DNA of 64,000 nucleotides, from sequence record LC680884.1; one strand, 5' to 3'. Numbering within the stretch: position 1 is the stretch's first letter; every line of letters starts with the position of its first letter. Below, piece by piece: positions 4,917-53,533 of the stretch. The notes below the pieces were generated by a model. It was not told the origin of the DNA and searched no databases. It worked only from the letters and a program-made list of their open reading frames with translations. The translations under genes were made by a program, and so were the position numbers.

Positions 4917-4929
4917 AAATATATATTAT
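4917..4929 (+). promoter_or_regulatory. Putative early (virion RNAP) promoter AAATATATATTAT
   Basis: Exact 13-mer recurring in several intergenic regions; precedes the gp226-like gene. Confidence 0.7.
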
Positions 4930-10030: not shown

Positions 10031-11080
10031 ATGACAACAGAGAGTAAAATTGTACCCATCGTTCATAAGGCGGTTAACTGGAACCGCCTTACTGATGAAT
10101 ATACTATTGATTTCTGGGATATTAATACTTCCCAATTTTGGTTAGAAAAAGAGATTGATTTAACTGGAGATATTGTTACTTGGAATAAAGTACTTAGTAA
10201 GGATGAACAAGAAGCATACTACAAAGTACTTGTTGGTTTAACAAAATTGGATACTGAACAAGGAAATGCAGGAATGCCATTAATTTCTCTTCATATTAAA
10301 GATGAACAAAAGAGTGCCGTTATTGCTTTTAGTGGTGCAATGGAACATGTACATGCTAAGTCGTATTCAGCTATTTTCTCAACACTTTGTTCTATGAGTC
10401 TAATTGATGAGATTTTTAAATGGGGAGAAGAACAAAAGAACCTTCAGTATAAAGCCGAAAAAATTGTTAAATATTATGACGCTATCTTTACTAAGGATAT
10501 TACTGATGAGATGTTATACAAAGCAATGGTAGCCAGTGTAATGTTAGAATCATTCTTATTCTATTCTGGATTCTTCTATCCTTTATACCTAGCTGGACAA
10601 GGCAAAATGGTAGCCAGTGGTGAAATTATTAACTTAATTATCCGTGATGAGTCAGTTCATGGTCAATATATGGGATTATTAGCTCAAGAGTTATTTGAAA
10701 AATTTGATATTAATAAACAGCAAGAATTAGTTCAATGGGCAAATGAACTATTAATGGATCTTTATGAAAATGAATTAGAATATACTGAAGAGATCTATTC
10801 TAAAATAGGATTAGTCGATGAAGTAAATGCATTCTTACGCTATAATGCTAATAATGCTTTTGATAACTTGGGTTTTAATCATTTATTTGATGATGAAGAT
10901 ATTAATCCAGTTGTAGAAAATGGACTTAATACAACTACTAAAAACCATGATTTCTTCTCAGTAAAAGGAAATGGTTATACTAAAGCACTAAATGTAACTC
11001 CTATTACAAAAGAAACATTTAAAATTGATCGCTTAGATGTAGACTTAATGTCTGAACTTAATGAACTCTCTGAAAGTTAA
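10031..11080 (+). CDS. nrdF: Ribonucleotide reductase class Ib beta subunit
   Basis: VNWN, EHVHAKSYS, LESFLFYSGF, IIRDESVHG, NHDFFSVKGNGY. Confidence 0.97.
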   Translation: MTTESKIVPIVHKAVNWNRLTDEYTIDFWDINTSQFWLEKEIDLTGDIVTWNKVLSKDEQEAYYKVLVGLTKLDTEQGNAGMPLISLHIKDEQKSAVIAFSGAMEHVHAKSYSAIFSTLCSMSLIDEIFKWGEEQKNLQYKAEKIVKYYDAIFTKDITDEMLYKAMVASVMLESFLFYSGFFYPLYLAGQGKMVASGEIINLIIRDESVHGQYMGLLAQELFEKFDINKQQELVQWANELLMDLYENELEYTEEIYSKIGLVDEVNAFLRYNANNAFDNLGFNHLFDDEDINPVVENGLNTTTKNHDFFSVKGNGYTKALNVTPITKETFKIDRLDVDLMSELNELSES

Positions 11081-19058: not shown

Positions 19059-19071
19059 ATAATATATATTT
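19059..19071 (-). promoter_or_regulatory. Putative early promoter AAATATATATTAT
   Basis: Exact 13-mer on the minus strand. Confidence 0.65.
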
Positions 19072-25334: not shown

Positions 25335-27670
25335 TTATCTTAATATATTATTAAACTTACCTTGTAGTTCATAGAAGAAGTCAGCAAATTTATTACCAAC
25401 TCTATCTTTAATTCCTGAACCTCCATCAAGGAAAGTAGTAAACAATAATGAATTTGATAGTTTTCTATTAATTAATGATTTAAATTTAAGAAAACTTAAT
25501 TGGTCTGGTCTTATTCCTGCCATATTTTCTAAGAATGATGCAATTCCCAAATTATAAGCAAGTAAACCAATATCTTTAATTTGAATCATTTGCGGATATA
25601 AATCTACTACGTTCATATTAACTTCAATCATTTGCGGATGACCGTCAACTGTCCAAAGACTATCAGCTCCGCCTTTAGTAATAGTCAAGCTTGTTACTAC
25701 TCCCATATCTATGTCAAAATACATTATCTTCCATTAGATTCGCTACATCTAATGCGTTCTCTTATGAACTGCTCTATGTTTCCATAGAGATGAGACTATA
25801 TCTTCACCCTCTCTAAAGAGGGGATTCCCGTTTCCATTTAAGGGATTTTCACCCACTCCAAACACTTGAGCCGTACTCCTATTGCCTATTTTTAGGCTAC
25901 TCATAATCTAACGATTACTTTCGGATAGTCGTTGAACGTTATTATTAGTAAAGAAGTCTTCTAGAATTATATCAACAGTATCCCTATATTTATATGGTAT
26001 TCTTAAAAGTGGAATATTATTAATCTTACAATAATTATTTTTATATTATTTTGTTTATTTTACTATTGATATAATTTTTTATTACACAATCTAAAACTAA
26101 TAATCTTCGCTGCTGATTATCTTCATCACAACATGTTAAGACTTTCCAGCAATTAGAGAATGATTGTTTCTTATGATTACTCATAAGCCGAGCTATTTAG
26201 TTAACCCGGACGAGACATTCTTACAAAGAATGGTTGCTGATATCCTAATAAACCGTCTTGACGCATAACCTTCCACTGAGTCGCTACTTCAGTGCGTTCT
26301 CTTATGAACTGCTCTATGTTTCCATAGAAGTTGAGACTATATCTTCACTCCAGCTTTTTGCCTTCATCATGCTCTTTGTTTCCCATATAGTATTAGTTTA
26401 CTATACTTACATTTATGCCTAAATGTAACCACGCTTGTGGGGTACTCTACTTCCTTCCATCAAATGATGTGGTTTCGATAGTCGTTGAGCTAGTAACTTC
26501 CATGTGGAAGTTTTAACTAGTTGCTGATTGTCCAATCTTATTAGTTTTTAAACATTCACGCTCACTGTCACCAGTCACGTTGTAGTCTAATAAGCTCTAA
26601 GGATGTTCCAGCAGTTAAAAGAGTTTTAATTGCCCCGTCATTTAAGGCAATGCTAATGCTAATAGTGCTATAAAAGGTACATACACGTATCTAAATATAC
26701 TTTCTCTATCACCATAAGGACTATAAAATTTGAAACTAATATTATAAGATTTATCAAATCTAGAATCTTGCCAAAAGTCAGGGAACATTAATTGTGATCC
26801 ATTTACAACACGAAATAATGCATTTGATGTACGAGTGATAATTCCATCAAATGAACCTAATGATTCTAGTACACCAATTGGATTAGCCGCTTTAATTGAG
26901 TCAACAATACGAGATGTTGTACTTCCTGTAGGATATAATAAATCTGCTTCCCTTAAAGTAGCCGCTTTCTCACTTACCATTTCTGCTGTTCTAGAAGCCG
27001 CATAAGTATTATCAGCTGACTCAGAAATAGTTGTAGATTTATCTGCATAAAAACATAATCCATAATTTTTAAAACTATTATTAAAGTCATCTGAGAATCT
27101 ATATAAATCAAATATGCCATCCATTGCCATATATGAATGTATAGTACTTAACATAGTTTGTACATATTTAAAGTATTCAGAATAATCTGCTTTAAACCCT
27201 ATGAAACGAAGGTCATTACCACTTTTTACTCCTCTAACTCCAAAATTAAAAATACTATTTGGATTATTTTGAAAATCCATTAATGCACGAGAAAGAGTAG
27301 CAGGAATAATACGTTTTCCTGCTACGTCAATCATATTTCTATTAATAGATGGAATTCCGGGAACCATGTATATATTAGGAATATCTTGAATAATGGTTTG
27401 ATTGTATACTCTTCCCGAAGGATCCGCTAAATCATTGTAGTATAAAGGTAAGCCTAATACACTATCTGATTTATATGGATTCCATGTAGGTGTAGCATAA
27501 GAACCAGAACCACCCTTAGAAGATCCAATTAACGCTTCAAAACCATCAGTATATTCTACACTTGTTCCAAATCCACCTTTTGAATCTGAATTAGAGTTAC
27601 CTTCTTGGAAAAACTCATCTCCAATTATCTGTGACTGTTGTTCATCAACGTTTTGCTGTTCATCTGCCAT
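25335..27670 (-). CDS. Spliced tail-tube initiator/baseplate junction protein (T4 gp48/gp54-like), 490 aa; exons 27670-26645, 26263-26204, 25721-25335
   Basis: Removing two introns gives ...ALLALALP|RQDGLLGYQQPFFVRMSRPG|YFDIDMGVVTSLTITKGG...DGHPQMIEV in one frame; directly downstream of the tape measure gene. Confidence 0.8.
25722..26203 (-). mobile_element. Group I intron B (482 nt) with endonuclease relic
   Basis: P1 CCGGGU/GCUCGG with U-G; core elements AAUUGCUGGAA, AAUCAGCAGC, GUUCAACGACUA, GAUAUAGUC; terminal G at 25722. Confidence 0.9.
26264..26644 (-). mobile_element. Group I intron A (381 nt, ORF-less)
   Basis: P1 UUGCCU/GGGCAA; AACUGCUGGAA, AAUCAGCA, CUCAACGACUA, GAUAUAGUC; terminal G at 26264. 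Confidence 0.9.
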
Positions 27671-45375: not shown

Positions 45376-48300
45376 TTGTTTTATCTTGATAATCTCAAGG
45401 AATTGAGAGTGTACTCTAATATAAAACTTTCATCCATTAAAAAAAGGAAAAATGACCGTAATTCAAATTTGATTTTCTTTTCAGGAAATAATCAAAGTGA
45501 AATATTTGATTTTATTAATTCTAATATATTCAGTCCTTCTTTTTTTAGAGGAGTATATATTCCAAGAGCATTCAATACTGTTCAAAAGAATAAAAGAATT
45601 ATTGTAGATCAAAAGAAATATTATGATGAGGTAAAAGCAAAATGCTCCAGTATTATTTATACTAAACGTGCTTTAACTAATTATAATGATCTTAACTTGA
45701 TCTATGATATTACAAATGAGCATCTTGAGAATGAAGTAGAGATTAAAGTTCGTGGAAGAAAACGAGTTGAAATGTATTTTGAGTTTCTTATATCTAAAAT
45801 TAAAGAGGGCGCATCATATGAGAATAAAGCAGTAGCAATTCCTGTTCCTGACAATGTTCTTGATCCATCATTCTTTGACTTAAATAATGCAAGAACACCT
45901 TTTGCTTATATCTATATGGCAATTAAAAGAAAGTTGTTAACAGAGGAACAGAAGAAAGAGCTTAAGAATGTAGACTTTATTTTTTATACTACAGTTAATA
46001 ATACATTTATTAAATTCAATATTAATGATGAACTTTCTAATCTTCTTGCAAATAGATTCCTTAATGCATTAAATATTCTTATTAAAACAGCAAATCATCA
46101 GAGGACTAATAATGATGAAAAACCTTTAGGTAAAGAAGATGCAACTCAAGAAACAGAAAACAAGAGAGATGCATTAGTAAAAGAAAAATCTGAAAAAGTT
46201 AAAGAAAAATTATTAAGTAATTTCCAAATTGATGGAAATACAAAATTATCCAGTAGTGCAATTGAAGTTACTGATAAGATTGGTGATGATATTGAAAAAG
46301 CTATTGATTCAAGTGATGAAGATATTCTTGATAAAAGTGAAGATGAAATCATTGATATCTTAAATAACAGTAAGGAATTAAAAGCTGATGTTTCAACTCT
46401 TAAAGAGCTTCAGTCTACTGGTGGAGATGAAATTAAACAGAGAAAGACTCTTGAACGCCTAAAAGAAAAACAAAAACAAGTTACTCTTGATGATATTAAT
46501 ATTCAAGATATTATTGATGATTTTAAATCAACAAGTATTGACCGAAAGCCAATTACCAATACAAATGTTATTCAAGAAGAAACTAGATATTCAAATCTTA
46601 AAGATTTTGATATGAGCTACTTTGAGAAACAGATGAAAAAAGACTTAGTTGCAGTTCTTTCATCATTTAATGGAGATAGCGATGTTAAATTATTTGTAAG
46701 TGATATTAAAACAGAAGACACATCTACTGATTTATCAAAGAAATTAACTTACACTGTTACTTTCCAAGATGATCGTAATGTAAAGCATACTGTTAAATTT
46801 GATTATCCTATTATCAGAGATGGTAGGTTTATGAATATTAATGGTGGTAAAAAATTAATTCTTAAGCAAATTCTATCTTTACCCATTGTAAAAACAAAAC
46901 CTGATGAAGTTCAGATTACTACTAACTACAATAAGTTTTTTGTCATGCGCTTTGGTTCTAAGCTATCTCATAAAACTGAGAAACTTAAGAAGCTTTTTGG
47001 TATGGATCTAAATGAATTTAAAGTATCAGGTAAGAAGTTTAATTATCGTCTAGGTAACGCTCTAACAATTAATGAGGGATATGAAACAACTCTTGAATAT
47101 AATGAAATCTCTTCCTTCCTTCTAAGCTTAGAGAATGATGAATATAAACTTATGTTCAGTCAAAAAGAAGTAGAAGATTTATTGAAAAGTGATCTTGATA
47201 ATATGGCTAAGCTTGCTAAGATTAATATTGATGATAAACAATTCTTACCAATCGGTCATACAAAAGATAATGAAAATGTTATTGCTCTTAAGCGTTCAAG
47301 TAAAAGAGTTTATCTGATTAATAATAAGAAACAAGAAAATACTGATATGAGTCTTTCAGAACTCATTATTAAAGTTGTTGTTACTTCACTTAGTGAGGAA
47401 GCTTATAAAAAATTATCTTCTTTAAGTAATTCTAAGTCTCTAGCATATAACCGAGTTCGTATTAATAATAGAATGATTCCTTTAGTGGTTCTTCTTGGAT
47501 ATGAATTAGGATTAGAAGATTTATTAGAAAGATATAATATTGAATATAGCTTTGATACTAAGAATAAGAGAATTACAATTGATGATGACTATGATAAGAT
47601 CCGTTTTAAAGATGGATACCTATATTATAATAATTCTTTATTGAGAAATTCCTTATTATTAAGTGGTCTAAGTACTATGGCTACTGAAGAGTATACATTT
47701 GAAGAAATGAACTCTAAAGATCCTTATATTGAAACTTTCTATGAGATGTTTGGTAGCAGAAATATGGGTAAAGGTCTCCATAATACTCTATCTCTAATGG
47801 TTGATCCTATCACATTAGATGTACTGAAACAGTTAGAATTACCTGAGAATATCTATGACATATTGTTGTATGCGAATACCTTATTGGAAGATATGAGCTA
47901 TAGTCCACTGAATGATATGAATTCATATCGAATCCGTGGTACTGAGCAAGTAAACGCCTACTTGTATAAAATCTTGGCAGATTCATTTAAAACGTATAAG
48001 GATACACTGAAAGCTGGTAATCCTATTAAGATGTCTGTTCCACAGGATATTCTATTAAAGACATTAATGAATTCACCTACTGTCGATGAATATAGTGTCC
48101 TTAACCCTTCTTTGGAAATTGAAAAGGGTGGTGCGGCTACTTACAAGGGGCTTTCAGGAAGGAACTTGGATTAAAGTGTTTTAGTCCAATTAAAACCTCT
48201 TTAACTGCTGGAAAACCCTTAGAGCCTTTAATACCAAATCTATATGGAAACATAATAGATGGCTGAATATAACAATTCAGGTATGGTAAAAATTTAAAGG

Positions 48301-51300
48301 ATTGGGTAATCATAAGCAACCAAGTACCTAAGTTACAAATTATTTGTAATAAGGTAAAGGTTCAACGACTATCGAAACCACTCTAACAGATCATTACAAT
48401 AATGCTAGTTAGTGGAAGGGAGTAGAGTACAGTCTAAGCGATTGAGGCTGGAAATGGGAGGCACTTTTAAGTGATGATATAGTCTCGTCTCTAGGGAAAC
48501 TTAGAGCAGTTCTAAGGAACGGTATAGGTGTAGCGAACCTATATGAAGGAAAACGGATGCTTATACAACTGATATTCGGGCTTATGACCCTAGTATGCGT
48601 GGAATCATGGCAATGTCAACACCCGACTCGGATTGAATTATTATAATTCTTGAATTCCCAGACAAGATTTATAATAGTCCCTTATAATAGAAATATTATA
48701 AGTAAACCTCTTTAACTGCTGGAAAATCCTTTAAGGACAATCAGCATCCAAGACTCATTAGAGTAAGGTTCAACGACTATCGAAACCACTCTAACAGATC
48801 GTTGTGATAACGCTAGTTAGAAGGAAGGGAGTAGAGTACAACTCAAGCGATTGGAGTTGGAAATGGGAGGCATCCTAATAGGATGATGATATAGTCTCAT
48901 CTTCATGGTAACATGAAGCAGTTCATAAGAGAACGCATTAGATGTAGCGAATCTAGTGGAAGATAATGAAAGTTGGGGTGAATTAAACTGCCCCCTTATA
49001 TAGTGATATATAATGATAAAATCTCTCTAACTACGGGAAACTCCTAATAATAGGACAATCCGTATCGAAGACTCTCGTTAAATATATATTATAATAGTAG
49101 TAAGTTAAAAAGGAGAGCTACTATTATGGAAAAAAATAAAATAATATATCTAAAAGAACAAAAATTATGGAGAGTAAGTTTCTATAATAAAGAAAAGAAA
49201 TCAAATTCCCTTGCACATTATTCAGAAGTTTTATATGGAGATTATAGTGAGCGTATAGCTATGAAAACATTAAAAGAAGGAAAAAGAGCATATAATTTTA
49301 TTGAAGTATTAGATGATCATGCATTATTAGTTACTTTTTCAAAAACATATGGTATCGTAAAATCTCAAATTGATATTGAAGATATTGATAAAATAAATAA
49401 GCATGTTTGGAGAGCTATCTGGTCTAAAAGAAATAATTCATTTTATATTTCAAGTAATTCAGGTGGAAAGCTTCATAGATACCTAATGGATATTAAAGAT
49501 AATAATAATGTAATTGATCATATAGATAGAAATAGTTTAAATAATAGAAAAAGTAATTTGCGTGAGGTTTCTCAAATGATGAATAATAGAAATACATCAC
49601 TAAGAAACGATAATACTTCTGGAATTAAAGGAATAAGATATTCTAAAAAGAAAAATAGATGGGAATCTGAAATCCGTGTTAATCATAAAAAATTTATTAA
49701 AACATTTGCAGTTAATAAATATGGTTTTGAAAAAGCTAAAGAACTAGCAATTACTTTTAGAAAAGAAATTGCTGAGAAAAACGGTTTTATAAATTATTTT
49801 TAATTATAACGAGAGTAACGTTCAACGACTATCCTTTAGTGGTTAACACACAATAGGAGTACGGCTCAAGCGATTGGAGTGGGTGAGAATCCCTTAAATG
49901 GAAATGGGAGATATCTAGTCATCTCCTTTCTTTTTTTTTGACTAGATAAAGATATAGTCTCATCTCTATGGTAACATAGAGCAGTTCATAAGAGAACGGT
50001 ATAGGTGTAGCGAACCTATATGAAGGTAATGGGTTAGACAGTTAACTTTTGATCCAGCATTCAAAAACACACGAGGATTCTTAGACACCAATCCTAATAC
50101 AAAAAATAATACGACAAATATCTATGGTCCGGCAGAGTTATTAAACTCCTTTACTGCTCGTCATGCCGACCCACCGCGCGTTGGAATGCAAACAACGCAG
50201 CAAAAGCATGATTCGTGCCTAGTAGTAGTAATATTGCTAGCAAAACCCTTTAACTGCTGGAAAATCCTAAAGCCTTTAGTACCAAAGTGTAACAATCTAA
50301 AGGATATATGGACAATCAGCATCCAAGCATTGTTATAAATAACAATGAAGGTTCAACGACTATCCGAAAGCAATCTTAGGATTGTGAGTAGCGGTGAAAT
50401 TCCGCAATAGGAGTACGGCTCAAGCGATTGGAGTGGGTGAGAATCCCTTAAATGGAAATGGGGGTTATCCTTAATAGATAAGGATAGTGATATAGTCTCG
50501 TCTCTATAGAAATATAGAGCAGTTCATAAGAGAACGCATTAGACGTAGCGAATCTAATGGAAGTTAACGATCATTCCTACCACAAAGCAATCTAAACCTC
50601 TATTTGGTAGTGGTGTAGAGAAGACTGTCGCTTACATTCTAAGTGACGACTTTGTGTTTAGAGCAAAAAAAGATGGAGTTCTAGAGTCCATAGATGAAGA
50701 ACATGAGTTAGCTGTCGTTCGTTATAATGATGGTAAGAAAGACGTCATTGATCTCTCCGAGCATATGAGTAAGAACAGTAATGGTGGTTTCTATATTTCC
50801 AATCGTAAAGAACTCATTATCAAAGTAGGAGAGAAATTCAAAAAAGATGATATCCTAGCGAAGAATCCAAGTTATTTCCTTGGCGATAAGAAAGATGATA
50901 TCACGTATACTACAGGGAAGCTTTGTAAAGTAGCACTAGCAAGCGCAGATTACACATATGAAGATAGTAGTATTATCACAGAAAGCTTATCTCAAGACCT
51001 ATCTACTAAGATTACTATGAAGAAAGAACTTGCTCTTGGAGTTAACTCAAACATTGACTTTATTGTTAAGAAAGGCGATATGGTTAAAACTGGTGATCCA
51101 CTGATTATCTTTGAAAACTCTTTTGAAGATAAATCACTCAACCAACTCTTAGATAAACTAGGAGATGACTTTAATGAGACTATTAATGAGTTATCTAAGA
51201 ACAAAGTAAGTTCTAAATATACTGGTAAGATTGTAGATGTTGTAATGTACTACAATAAAGATATCAGTGAGTTTTCTCCTTCAGTACAAAAGATTCTGAA

Positions 51301-51700
51301 GAACTATATTAAAGATAGTAAGAAGAAAGAAGATAAGATTAAGTCTGTTACTAATGATCTGACTTCTGTTAATCTTAAACCTATTCAAAAGCAATCAGGT
51401 GAGAAAATTAAAGGTACTGAGGTAGATGGACTACTCATTGAGATTTATATTGAGTATGATGATGAACTTGGTATTGGAGATAAGATTACGTATTATACAG
51501 CACTTAAAACAATTGTATCTGATGTTATTCCTAAAGATCAAGAGCCTTTTAGTGAGAATGATCCAGATGAGAATATTGAAGCCATTATGAGTCCATTAAG
51601 TATCGTTTCACGCATGACCGTTGATATTTACAATGCATTGTATTTAAATAAAGCTTTAGTTCATCTTAAGAGAGAAATTGGTAAAATATATTCAGAATAA
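45376..51700 (+). CDS. Spliced RNA polymerase beta-like subunit, probably virion RNAP, 1397 aa; exons 45376-48171, 48556-48633, 48969-48979, 50032-50209, 50570-51700
   Basis: Beta motifs FMNINGGKKLILKQ, STPDSD|KVGV|VRQL (bacterial TPEGPNIGL), HADPPRVGMQTTQQKH|IIP...GSGVE, GDKITY...SPLSIVSRM. Exons total 4194 nt in one frame. The late promoter suggests the packaged RNAP. Confidence 0.9.
48172..48555 (+). mobile_element. Group I intron 1 (384 nt)
   Basis: P1 UUGGAU/GUCCAA; AACUGCUGGAA, GUUCAACGACUA, GAUAUAGUC; terminal G. Confidence 0.9.
48634..48968 (+). mobile_element. Group I intron 2 (335 nt)
   Basis: P1 GGAU/GUCC; core elements present; terminal G; frame restored. Confidence 0.88.
49080..49092 (+). 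promoter_or_regulatory. Intron-internal putative early promoter AAATATATATTAT
   Basis: Exact 13-mer 33 nt upstream of the endonuclease ATG. Confidence 0.7.
49126..49803 (+). CDS. Intron-encoded HNH endonuclease with AP2 DNA-binding domain
   Basis: LHRYLM...VIDHIDRNSLNNRKSNLREV...NNRN (HNH) then NTSGIKGI...RWESEI...F...KYG.E.A..LA (AP2). Confidence 0.9.
   Translation: MEKNKIIYLKEQKLWRVSFYNKEKKSNSLAHYSEVLYGDYSERIAMKTLKEGKRAYNFIEVLDDHALLVTFSKTYGIVKSQIDIEDIDKINKHVWRAIWSKRNNSFYISSNSGGKLHRYLMDIKDNNNVIDHIDRNSLNNRKSNLREVSQMMNNRNTSLRNDNTSGIKGIRYSKKKNRWESEIRVNHKKFIKTFAVNKYGFEKAKELAITFRKEIAEKNGFINYF
50210..50569 (+). mobile_element. Group I intron 4 (360 nt)
   Basis: P1 GCAU/GUGC; core elements; terminal G; frame restored into exon 5. 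Confidence 0.9.
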
Positions 51701-51769: not shown

Positions 51770-53533
51770 ATGATTGTTTTGCCTAAAAAGACTACTGAAA
51801 TGTTTATTAAAGAAGTGTATGATTTAGTAGGAGATGAATATACTGTATTAGGAGAATATACTGGAACTAATAATAAAATAAAAATGAAACATGAAAAGTG
51901 CAGTCATGAATACTATGTCTCACCAAATGGCTTTTTAAATGCAGGTAATAGATGTCCTTTACATAAATCAGAGAGAATATCTAAAAGAAAAAATAAGACT
52001 ACTGAAATGTTTATTAAAGAAGTGTATGATTTAGTAGGAGATGAATATACTGTATTAGGAGAATATATTAATAGTTCTAAACTAGTATTACTTAGACATA
52101 ACATCTGTAATAAGGAGTTTAAAAAAAGACCTAATGACTTTCTCAGTAAGGGTTCAAGATGTCCTGATTGTACTAAGAAACTAATAAAAAGGAAAAAGAC
52201 AAAGACTACTGAAATGTTTATTAAAGAAGTGTATGATTTAGTAGGAGATGAATATACTGTATTAGGAGAATATATTAGCTCTCAAGATAAAATTGAGATG
52301 AGACACAATACTAGTGATTCTCATAATTTCTTTATTACACCAACTAATTTCCTAAAAAGAAAAAGGTGTAATATATGTAATAAAAATCCAAAAAATAAAG
52401 GATCTAATGGTTTTAAAGAAGATTTTTATAGAATATTTAATAGTAATGATTATACAATTAAGAGTAGATATATTAATAATAAAACTCCAATAGTTATTGA
52501 GCATTCATGTGGCTATTCTTGGGAGGTTAGACCGGTCGATATTTTACATGGTAATTCAAGAGGTAAAAAAGTTAAAAGAGATTGTCCTAGATGTCAACTA
52601 AAGAAACATAATTCAAAAGATGAGATTGAATTATATGATTATATTAAACAAATTCTCCCCAATAGCACTAATGTAATTCTATCAGACAGAAAAATACTTG
52701 AAGGTTTAGAACTGGATATTTATATACCTTCAAAGAAAATAGCAATTGAATATAACGGTTTATATTGGCATGGTGAATCTCAAGGAAAAGATAGAAACTA
52801 CCATTTAAATAAATTGAAAAAATGTAATGAAAAGGGTATAAGATTAATTCATTTATTTGAGAATGAGTGGATTGATAATAAAGAACTTATAAAGGGAAAG
52901 ATAAAACATATTTTAGGTTTAAATAATGGAGAAAAAATATATGCTAGAAAATGTTATATAGAAGAAATTCAGAATAATGTGAAAAGAGATTTTTTAGATA
53001 AAAATCATATTCAAGGATCTGATAACTCTACTATTAAACTGGGACTATGGTATCCAAGGAATGAGGGTGATGAGTTAGTAGCAGTAATGACATTCTGTAA
53101 ACCTAGAGTTAGCTTAGGGCAAAAAGGGAATAAATATGACTATGAATTAAGTAGATTTGCTACAGAAAGAGACTATAATGTAATAGGTAGTTTTGGAAAA
53201 TTATTCAGTTATTTTAAAAAGAATTATGATTGGAATAAAATCATAACATATGCTGATTTAAGATGGTCAGAAGGAAATGTATATCATAAAAATAGCTTTC
53301 ACTTTATGCATAACTCTCAGCCAAATTATTGGTATTTTAATAAAAATAAATTGAGTCTTTCACATAGATACAACTATAGAAAACAAAGATTAAAAGAATT
53401 ATTTCCAGAAATTTATAGTAATGATAAAACAGAAATTCAAATTATGAGAGAAGCTGGTTATGATAGAATTTGGGATTGTGGAAATTTAGTCTTTGAGTAT
53501 ACAAAAAAAAAAATAAAGGATAGAGATATTTAG
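51770..53533 (+). CDS. Free-standing putative homing endonuclease: Zn-finger repeats, Vsr/PD-(D/E)xK-like domain and Hef-like C-terminal region
   Basis: Repeated KTTEMFIKEVYDLVGDEYTVLGEY...H..C units; LELDIYIPSKKIAIEYNGLYWH; KIYARKC...NHIQG...TYADLRWS...RIWDCG. Confidence 0.7.
   Translation: MIVLPKKTTEMFIKEVYDLVGDEYTVLGEYTGTNNKIKMKHEKCSHEYYVSPNGFLNAGNRCPLHKSERISKRKNKTTEMFIKEVYDLVGDEYTVLGEYINSSKLVLLRHNICNKEFKKRPNDFLSKGSRCPDCTKKLIKRKKTKTTEMFIKEVYDLVGDEYTVLGEYISSQDKIEMRHNTSDSHNFFITPTNFLKRKRCNICNKNPKNKGSNGFKEDFYRIFNSNDYTIKSRYINNKTPIVIEHSCGYSWEVRPVDILHGNSRGKKVKRDCPRCQLKKHNSKDEIELYDYIKQILPNSTNVILSDRKILEGLELDIYIPSKKIAIEYNGLYWHGESQGKDRNYHLNKLKKCNEKGIRLIHLFENEWIDNKELIKGKIKHILGLNNGEKIYARKCYIEEIQNNVKRDFLDKNHIQGSDNSTIKLGLWYPRNEGDELVAVMTFCKPRVSLGQKGNKYDYELSRFATERDYNVIGSFGKLFSYFKKNYDWNKIITYADLRWSEGNVYHKNSFHFMHNSQPNYWYFNKNKLSLSHRYNYRKQRLKELFPEIYSNDKTEIQIMREAGYDRIWDCGNLVFEYTKKKIKDRDI
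51788..52274 (+). repeat. Three identical 73-bp intragenic repeats at exact 207-bp spacing (51788, 51995, 52202)
   Basis: AAGACTACTGAAATG...GGAGAATATA compared base by base; 69-aa period. Confidence 0.9.

Follow-up and report, generated by a model that had tools for sequence, protein, structure and literature searches.

Four tandem group I introns and an 11-nucleotide exon in the virion RNA polymerase gene of Bacillus phage PBS1: a probable hotspot of mobile introns

In Bacillus phage AR9 (GenBank KU878088), which belongs with phage PBS1 to one species, Takahashivirus PBS1, the early gene g190 lies within an intron of the late gene g189, and both an early-promoter consensus and the g190 promoter have been described (PMC5312081; Lavysh et al. 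2017 mBio). Among other phage genes, orf142 of Staphylococcus phage Twort carries three related group I introns and shows exon skipping, according to secondary accounts of Landthaler and Shub (1999), and the same accounts describe cross-use of splice sites there and in the SIOphi polymerase gene (PMC3073962, PMC11878797). In PhiPA3, gp210 is associated with a group I intron with an HNH endonuclease at a highly conserved motif of a virion RNA polymerase (RNAP) subunit gene (Birkholz et al. 2024, PMC11620839), and very short exons are on record from cox1 of Agaricus bisporus (down to 3 nt; PMC2987802) and rnl of Ophiostoma (a 1-nt mini-exon between two group II introns; PMC12308204). Here we analyze a 64,000-nucleotide stretch of PBS1 DNA (record LC680884.1, hereafter the window), in which the orthologue of AR9 g189, encoding a beta-like subunit of the virion RNAP, is interrupted by four group I introns, the second and third of them separated by an 11-nt micro-exon. 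The structure is already known, in that the AR9 orthologue is annotated and organelle micro-exons between self-splicing introns have been recorded. We conclude that the best-conserved segment of the gene is very probably a hotspot at which mobile introns and homing endonucleases accumulate, with the micro-exon as a by-product.

A megablast search with positions 47400-51400 identifies the window as PBS1 at 100% identity, with coordinates the same as those of LC680884.1, and matches AR9 at 98.7% DNA identity. Because their intron content differs from that of PBS1, phages Internexus and Goe21 match over only 48% and 41% of the query, respectively. Both GenBank records of PBS1 (MF360957 and LC680884) represent the gene, at 45376-51700, as separate, unjoined open reading frames (ORFs; 'hypothetical protein' and 'RNA polymerase beta subunit'), and the Internexus and Goe21 records likewise annotate separate ORFs without a join. 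A first-pass annotation, made from the letters of the window, had proposed four group I introns separated by exons of 78, 11, and 178 nt; all of its boundaries were reproduced to the base from the sequence, giving the following layout (a slash marks the splice site, and P1 is the helix between the 5' exon and the intron guide).
45376-48171, + strand: exon 1 of the virion RNAP beta-like subunit gene (AR9 g189 orthologue), 932 codons, ending AAC TTG GAT; an ORF matching AR9 AMS01273.1
48172-48555, + strand: intron 1, group I, 384 nt, without an ORF; in-frame TAA at its start; P1 of UUGGAU/UAAA with UUUAGUCCAA
48556-48633, + strand: exon 2, 78 nt (DAYTTDIRAYDPSMRGIMAMSTPDSD)
48634-48968, + strand: intron 2, group I, 335 nt, without an ORF; in-frame TGA at its start; P1 of GGAU with GUCC, and an extended P1 loop
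48969-48979, + strand: micro-exon AAAGTTGGGGT, 11 nt, encoding K, V, G, and the first two bases of V
48980-50031, + strand: intron 3, group I, 1052 nt, its P6 loop containing an ORF; P1 of GGGGU/G with UGCCCC
50032-50209, + strand: exon 4, 178 nt, ending CAA AAG CAT (QQKH)
50210-50569, + strand: intron 4, group I, 360 nt, without an ORF in PBS1; P1 of GCAU/G with CGUGC
50570-51700, + strand: exon 5, 376 codons and the stop

The presence of four group I introns, well above chance, is confirmed by the Rfam covariance model RF00028 (gathering cut-off, 50 bits), with which introns 1 to 4 score 65.3, 102.4, 51.7, and 81.5 bits (E values of 3e-10 to 2e-25), all above gathering. Intron 3 is matched as two halves around its ORF (28.6 bits for the 5' half and 39 to 52 bits for the 3' half), and the ORF-less copy of this intron in Internexus gives a single match of 74.4 bits. 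In all four introns the terminal base of the 5' exon is a U, lying opposite a G in the P1 predicted from minimum free energy (MFE) folds of the 5' regions, and P1 sits directly upstream of the P2 hairpin, with the guide segments occupying the same alignment columns. Each intron ends in G (48555, 48968, 50031, and 50569), within a common 3' motif, GAAGnTAAyG. The intron 1 P1 is present in the MFE fold, with a z-score of -3.2 against shuffled sequences, and the MFE P1 of intron 3 is GGGGUG/UGCCCC (here a slash separates the strands), with micro-exon bases 7-11 as its 5' strand; together with the spliced frame, this bears out the proposal that the micro-exon supplies both K-V-G-V and the GGGGU/GCCCC helix of intron 3. 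The four introns belong to a single family: identity among their 3' modules is 63 to 80% (79% for introns 1 and 2, and 79% for introns 3 and 4). In all four Rfam alignments, an insertion of about 80 to 90 nt, containing hairpin-capable segments, separates the 5' strand of P7 from the 3' strand of P3. Subgroup IA introns, which are typical of phages, have P7.1/P7.2 there, and by this placement the PBS1 introns appear IA-like.

When the five exons are joined they form a coding sequence of 4194 nt with no internal stop, specifying 1397 residues. The junction of the micro-exon with exon 4 splits a Val codon (GT/G), and since the micro-exon and exon 4 together are 189 nt long (11 + 178), the frame is kept only when introns 2 and 3 are both removed; the first-pass view that only complete splicing restores the frame stands. 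Uninterrupted metagenomic homologues of 1379 to 1397 residues (P0003, P0004, and P0008) align with the spliced translation with no gap at any of the four junctions, and STPDSDKVGVVRQL is identical in them. Intron-less alleles show the same junctions in DNA. First, in Goe21 exon 1 is fused to exon 2 precisely at 48171/48556. Second, the contig L007 from ENA encodes a protein more than 90% identical to that of PBS1, uninterrupted at all four sites, and reads GAT/AAGGTTGGGGT/GGTAAG across the micro-exon. Third, L006, a more distant jumbo-phage contig, is intron-free, and an RF00028 scan of it gave no match. The DNA of both L007 and L006 is collinear with the PBS1 exons over all four junctions.

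The AR9 gene is annotated as a six-piece join and contains five Rfam introns, in agreement with the first-pass statement that AR9 introns had been reported; the deposited protein, AMS01273.1, contains TPDSDKVGVVRQLTFDP and, compared with the PBS1 spliced product, has eight substitutions and one additional residue. Across the junctions of intron 2, the micro-exon, and intron 3, AR9, Internexus, and both PBS1 records have the same sequence. The 11-nt exon is therefore real, and it is already part of the public AR9 annotation. We note that introns 2 and 3 are not a twintron, a reading that we considered and rejected: they lie side by side with 11 coding nt between them, and these are kept in the product. 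As a separate observation, the extra Val of AR9 gp189 (GGF-V-YIAN) is located at the AR9 intron 5 junction (L001 6383-6686); applying the rule of a terminal exon U and a terminal intron G (omega-G) there gives GGT GGG T/TT TAC, and GGFY is what homologues without this intron have, PBS1 and L006 among them. The AR9 annotation probably places the intron 5 junction 3 nt off. This fifth site is empty in PBS1 (at about 50789/50790).

The introns were also suggested to interrupt conserved segments of the beta subunit, and a PDB sequence search with an uninterrupted homologue supports this: STPDSDKVGVV aligns with ETPEGPNIGLI of bacterial beta (a weak domain match), placing sites at the TPEGPNIGLI segment, and RIGMQTTQQKHIIPT aligns with RALMGANMQRQAVPT in the region of the NMQRQAVP motif. 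The search returned bacterial beta subunits only, and no phage RNAP structure.

Comparison among relatives shows that occupancy of this region is highly variable. Some insertion positions were taken from the ends of tblastn blocks and are possibly off by one codon.
PBS1: introns 1 to 4
AR9 and Internexus: PBS1 introns 1 to 4, and a fifth intron at F1095 (about 301 nt in AR9)
Internexus: intron 3 without an ORF, and a different ORF in intron 4
Goe21: no intron 1, and one ORF-bearing intron at AAG GT/T GGC replacing introns 2 and 3
BpSp (Bacillus phage vB_BpuM-BpSp, KT895374; L014 8773-12570): five intron-sized interruptions in the same region of about 180 codons, three of them Rfam matches; about 54% protein identity
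Other contigs: L013, near residues 1008/1009; L015, at 1011/1012; L005, inside M1015 (AT/G)

Intron 1 is absent from L007 and L006 as well as from Goe21. The Goe21 insertion site falls inside the PBS1 micro-exon, leaving 5 nt on the intron 2 side and 6 nt on the intron 3 side, and it is shared with BpSp (AAG GT/T). BpSp also has a 33-nt mini-exon (RIGMQSTQQKH; 10394-10426) between two introns, and its GenBank record annotates only a 933-residue fragment of the orthologous gene. Over these relatives there are at least 10 insertion sites between residues 913 and 1096, three of which lie within the 11-nt stretch. A scan of viral contigs returned only AR9 and one distant relative, adding nothing to the intron census, and scanning metagenome contigs with an alignment of four proteins gave two short contigs, both of which stop before the intron region. 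The comparison adds nucleotide-level junction support from intron-less alleles, a multi-site hotspot, a patch of exon divergence, and guide sequences common to different sites.

The last two of these bear on how the cluster could have arisen. GGAU precedes both intron 1 and intron 2, and in each the guide core is GUCC. PBS1 intron 4, the L005 intron, and BpSp intron D are each preceded by GCAU and have the guide GUGCC, and the L005 site is 20 nt away from that of PBS1 intron 4 and BpSp intron D; this suggests that related introns may have relocated to guide-compatible sites. When PBS1 is compared with the intron-free L007 (4001-9550), the exons form a mosaic. Upstream of the intron 1 site, in exon 1, identity is about 98%; the values for exon 2, the micro-exon, and exon 4 are 88%, 91%, and 81%, and the opening 222 nt of exon 5 give 80%, before a return to 97.7% past the intron 5 site. 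Identity between Goe21 and PBS1 also dips, though less, from exon 2 through the micro-exon to exon 4. Homing with co-conversion of the neighboring exon sequence would leave a divergent patch with intron sites at its limits, and so would recombination at the cluster.

Endonuclease genes are found within and beside the cluster, as follows.
49126-49803, + strand: predicted intron-encoded HNH-AP2 homing endonuclease in intron 3, 225 residues, AR9 g190 orthologue (Pfam and AR9 annotation)
49080-49092, + strand: AR9 early-promoter consensus AAATATATATTAT, matched exactly, 33 nt ahead of the intron 3 ORF
51770-53533, + strand: free-standing homing-endonuclease-like gene (AR9 g188, 'Hef-like'), directly downstream of the RNAP gene, with CapR/DUF4379-type repeats

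The intron 3 ORF, which an alignment to intron 2 places in the P6 loop, scores 52.2 bits with Pfam AP2. Internexus has a clean 638-nt deletion within this ORF (L002 5745-5747 versus window 49147-49784) that leaves its first 21 nt and last 20 or so nt, which looks like loss of the endonuclease from an otherwise intact intron. The downstream gene at 51770-53533 is absent from Goe21. Its PBS1 product has three tandem repeats of about 70 residues at the N-terminus, and proteins with such CapR/DUF4379 (treble-clef) repeats are found inside introns or beside the gene at window 51770-53533, L003 2967-4001, L002 6376-7482, and L007 7438-8466. The repeat family probably corresponds to the 'Hef-like'/EDxHD-Vsr-like homing endonuclease group of PMC12350094. 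Other exact copies of the AAATATATATTAT core are present in the window at 4917 and, on the minus strand, at 19059, 36920, 60416, and 61424.

We propose that each intron recognizes its own 5' exon through a short guide (the P1 helix, with its U.G pair), ends in G, and would self-splice independently, so that removal of all four yields a single 1397-residue protein. Mobility of intron 3 would be conferred by the HNH-AP2 homing endonuclease, expressed from its own early promoter, and the ORF-less introns probably hitch-hike by co-conversion or have shifted to nearby guide-matching sites. Direct observation covers the introns and their junctions, the polymorphism, and the exon mosaic; homing and hitch-hiking are what we infer from them. 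The micro-exon would be the remainder between two neighboring insertion sites, and it would be tolerated because 5 to 6 nt suffice for the intron 3 P1 and intron 2 appears not to need a P10. Inspection by eye for P10 pairing between the 3' exon and the guide region revealed none convincing for introns 1 or 2; because no P10 was found for intron 2, its exon ligation would rest on docking of omega-G. A pairing of UUGGGG with UCCCAG, between the micro-exon and the intron 2 P1 loop, is possible and is invariant in all copies, such that covariation is uninformative. Ribozyme cores docked 6 nt apart may sterically exclude each other, making splicing at the micro-exon sequential yet unordered.

Several points weigh against this proposal. 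The HNH_3 score of the intron 3 ORF (22.7 bits) is just under the cut-off of 24.8, and the exon mosaic could be explained by ordinary recombination without homing. For intron 3 and the Goe21 intron, the P1 folds barely beat shuffled sequences (z-scores of -1.9 and -1.6), and the P1 helices of intron 2 (four exon base pairs) and the Goe21 intron (three) are short. Self-splicing in PBS1, and its efficiency, are deduced from sequence; in AR9, splicing was reportedly shown, according to the abstract of the genome paper (Lavysh et al. 2016 Virology). Nonetheless, a hotspot of mobile introns remains by a wide measure the most probable explanation of the locus.

The alternative that survives best would add to this selfish model and not replace it. 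By analogy with PhiPA3 gp210, which cuts the PhiKZ gene, the intron-borne and adjacent endonucleases may cut the conserved RNAP gene of co-infecting intron-less relatives, and the dense introns may shield their carrier by destroying several target sites at once. The HNH-AP2 endonuclease with its own early promoter in intron 3, the second endonuclease-like gene immediately downstream, and the concentration of exon divergence at the intron cluster are all consistent with such a role, as are the differing endonuclease-type ORFs in the same introns of Goe21, Internexus, and L007, and the PhiPA3 precedent itself concerns a jumbo-phage virion RNAP gene (PMC11620839). However, three of the four PBS1 introns have no endonuclease, and neutral homing explains the pattern equally well. 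We regard a weapon or immunity function as rather unlikely.

Whether splicing errors could be put to use depends on which exon is liable to be lost. Exon skipping, raised in the first-pass annotation as a route to a dead polymerase, is a legitimate possibility given the Twort orf142 precedent, and loss of the micro-exon would indeed shift the frame; the exon most at risk, however, is the 78-nt exon 2 and not the 11-nt exon, because introns 1 and 2 have the same guide. If splice sites are cross-used, the likeliest event would be attack of the intron 2 ribozyme on the 5' site of intron 1, resulting in in-frame loss of exon 2, whereas for the micro-exon to be skipped the intron 2 core would have to use a 3' site over 1 kb distant. 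A further scheme can be envisaged in which the shared guides are functional: introns would hop by guide-directed, reverse-splicing-like reactions within the gene, and their cross-reaction in the transcript would gate how much functional virion RNAP is packaged, a defined fraction of mRNA being exon-2-skipped (in frame, lacking 26 residues) or frame-shifted. As another option, the dense locus would serve as a multi-endonuclease weapon and immunity system when PBS1-like phages compete. Taken together, we consider these schemes improbable.

Somewhat less plausible still is that the tandem introns and micro-exon impose an obligatory splicing order, with incomplete splicing or skipping controlling virion RNAP production. 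In its favor, skipping of an 11-nt exon would shift the frame of what in AR9 is a late gene (PMC5312081), the introns are closely related, with introns 1 and 2 sharing GUCC and GGAU so that cross-use of splice sites is chemically plausible, and skipping has precedents in Twort orf142 and a Bastillevirinae polymerase gene (PMC3073962, PMC11878797). As a separate observation, the placement of stops in the introns may be relevant to interference between translation and splicing. In introns 1 and 2, TAA and TGA lie exactly at the splice sites (48172 and 48634), and intron 3 has an in-frame TAA after two codons (48983-48985); with in-frame stops at the start of introns 1 to 3, ribosomes would halt at unspliced sites. 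In intron 4 the frame is open for 42 codons (50210-50338; ORF 50186-50338), into the P3-P6 core. The first-pass inference of a constrained order finds no support: each intron has its own guide and P1, and no pairing ties one intron to the earlier removal of another. The pairing scheme forces no order, because the intron 3 P1 needs only micro-exon bases 7-11 and no P10 was found by eye for intron 2. The accompanying suggestion of a control point fares no better, since the introns are dispensable and individually polymorphic (Goe21, L007, and the AR9 fifth intron); near-identical phages manage without some or all of them, and they are therefore not needed for the infection programme. The presence or absence of endonuclease genes and the exon mosaic instead indicate selfish mobility. 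Finally, although the PBS1 records annotate separate coding sequences and RNAP subunits of jumbo phages are known to be split elsewhere along their length (PMC7598289), we reject the reading that nothing is spliced and the subunit is made as separate polypeptides of 932 and 348 residues, which is extremely improbable given that it would cost the gene 89 codons with universally conserved motifs, that the breaks coincide exactly with four Rfam-significant ribozymes, and that uninterrupted homologues and the AR9 join exist.

In practical terms, both PBS1 records mis-annotate an essential gene, to which the AR9-style join should be carried over. The locus is a compact natural system for the intron load tolerated by one essential phage gene, and it bears also on the minimum length of an exon between two ribozymes and on the turnover of introns and homing endonucleases. 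With at least 10 sites in about 180 codons, three of them in 11 nt, and a bounded patch of divergence, it may serve studies of intron mobility and phage competition, although the findings leave known principles unchanged. We also observed a fifth group I intron in the window at 26312-26665 on the minus strand (RF00028, 56.1 bits), between ORFs at 26642-27670 and 25335-25724; the region is labeled 'virion protein' in AR9, and both PBS1 records list its pieces as separate hypothetical proteins.

Among known systems, AR9 g189/g190 has the same four introns, 11-nt exon, and HNH-AP2 ORF with an early promoter as PBS1, and differs in having the fifth intron (about 301 nt, at F1095) and in the join that the PBS1 records lack. 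BpSp has introns in its RNAP beta gene at partly different sites, and no 11-nt exon. Twort orf142 resembles PBS1 in having several closely related group I introns in one structural or late phage gene, and PhiPA3 in having a jumbo-phage virion RNAP gene interrupted at a conserved motif by an endonuclease-encoding group I intron. Skipping is documented for orf142 in secondary accounts, and interference competition has been demonstrated experimentally for PhiPA3; PhiPA3 moreover has a single intron, apparently in a different subunit (its site is at conserved Asp residues), and PBS1 a tandem cluster. Organellar genes share with PBS1 the occurrence of micro-exons as remnants between neighboring mobile-intron sites in conserved cores, but those cases are eukaryotic and many of the introns are maturase-dependent, whereas in PBS1 the micro-exon lies in a bacteriophage protein-coding gene.

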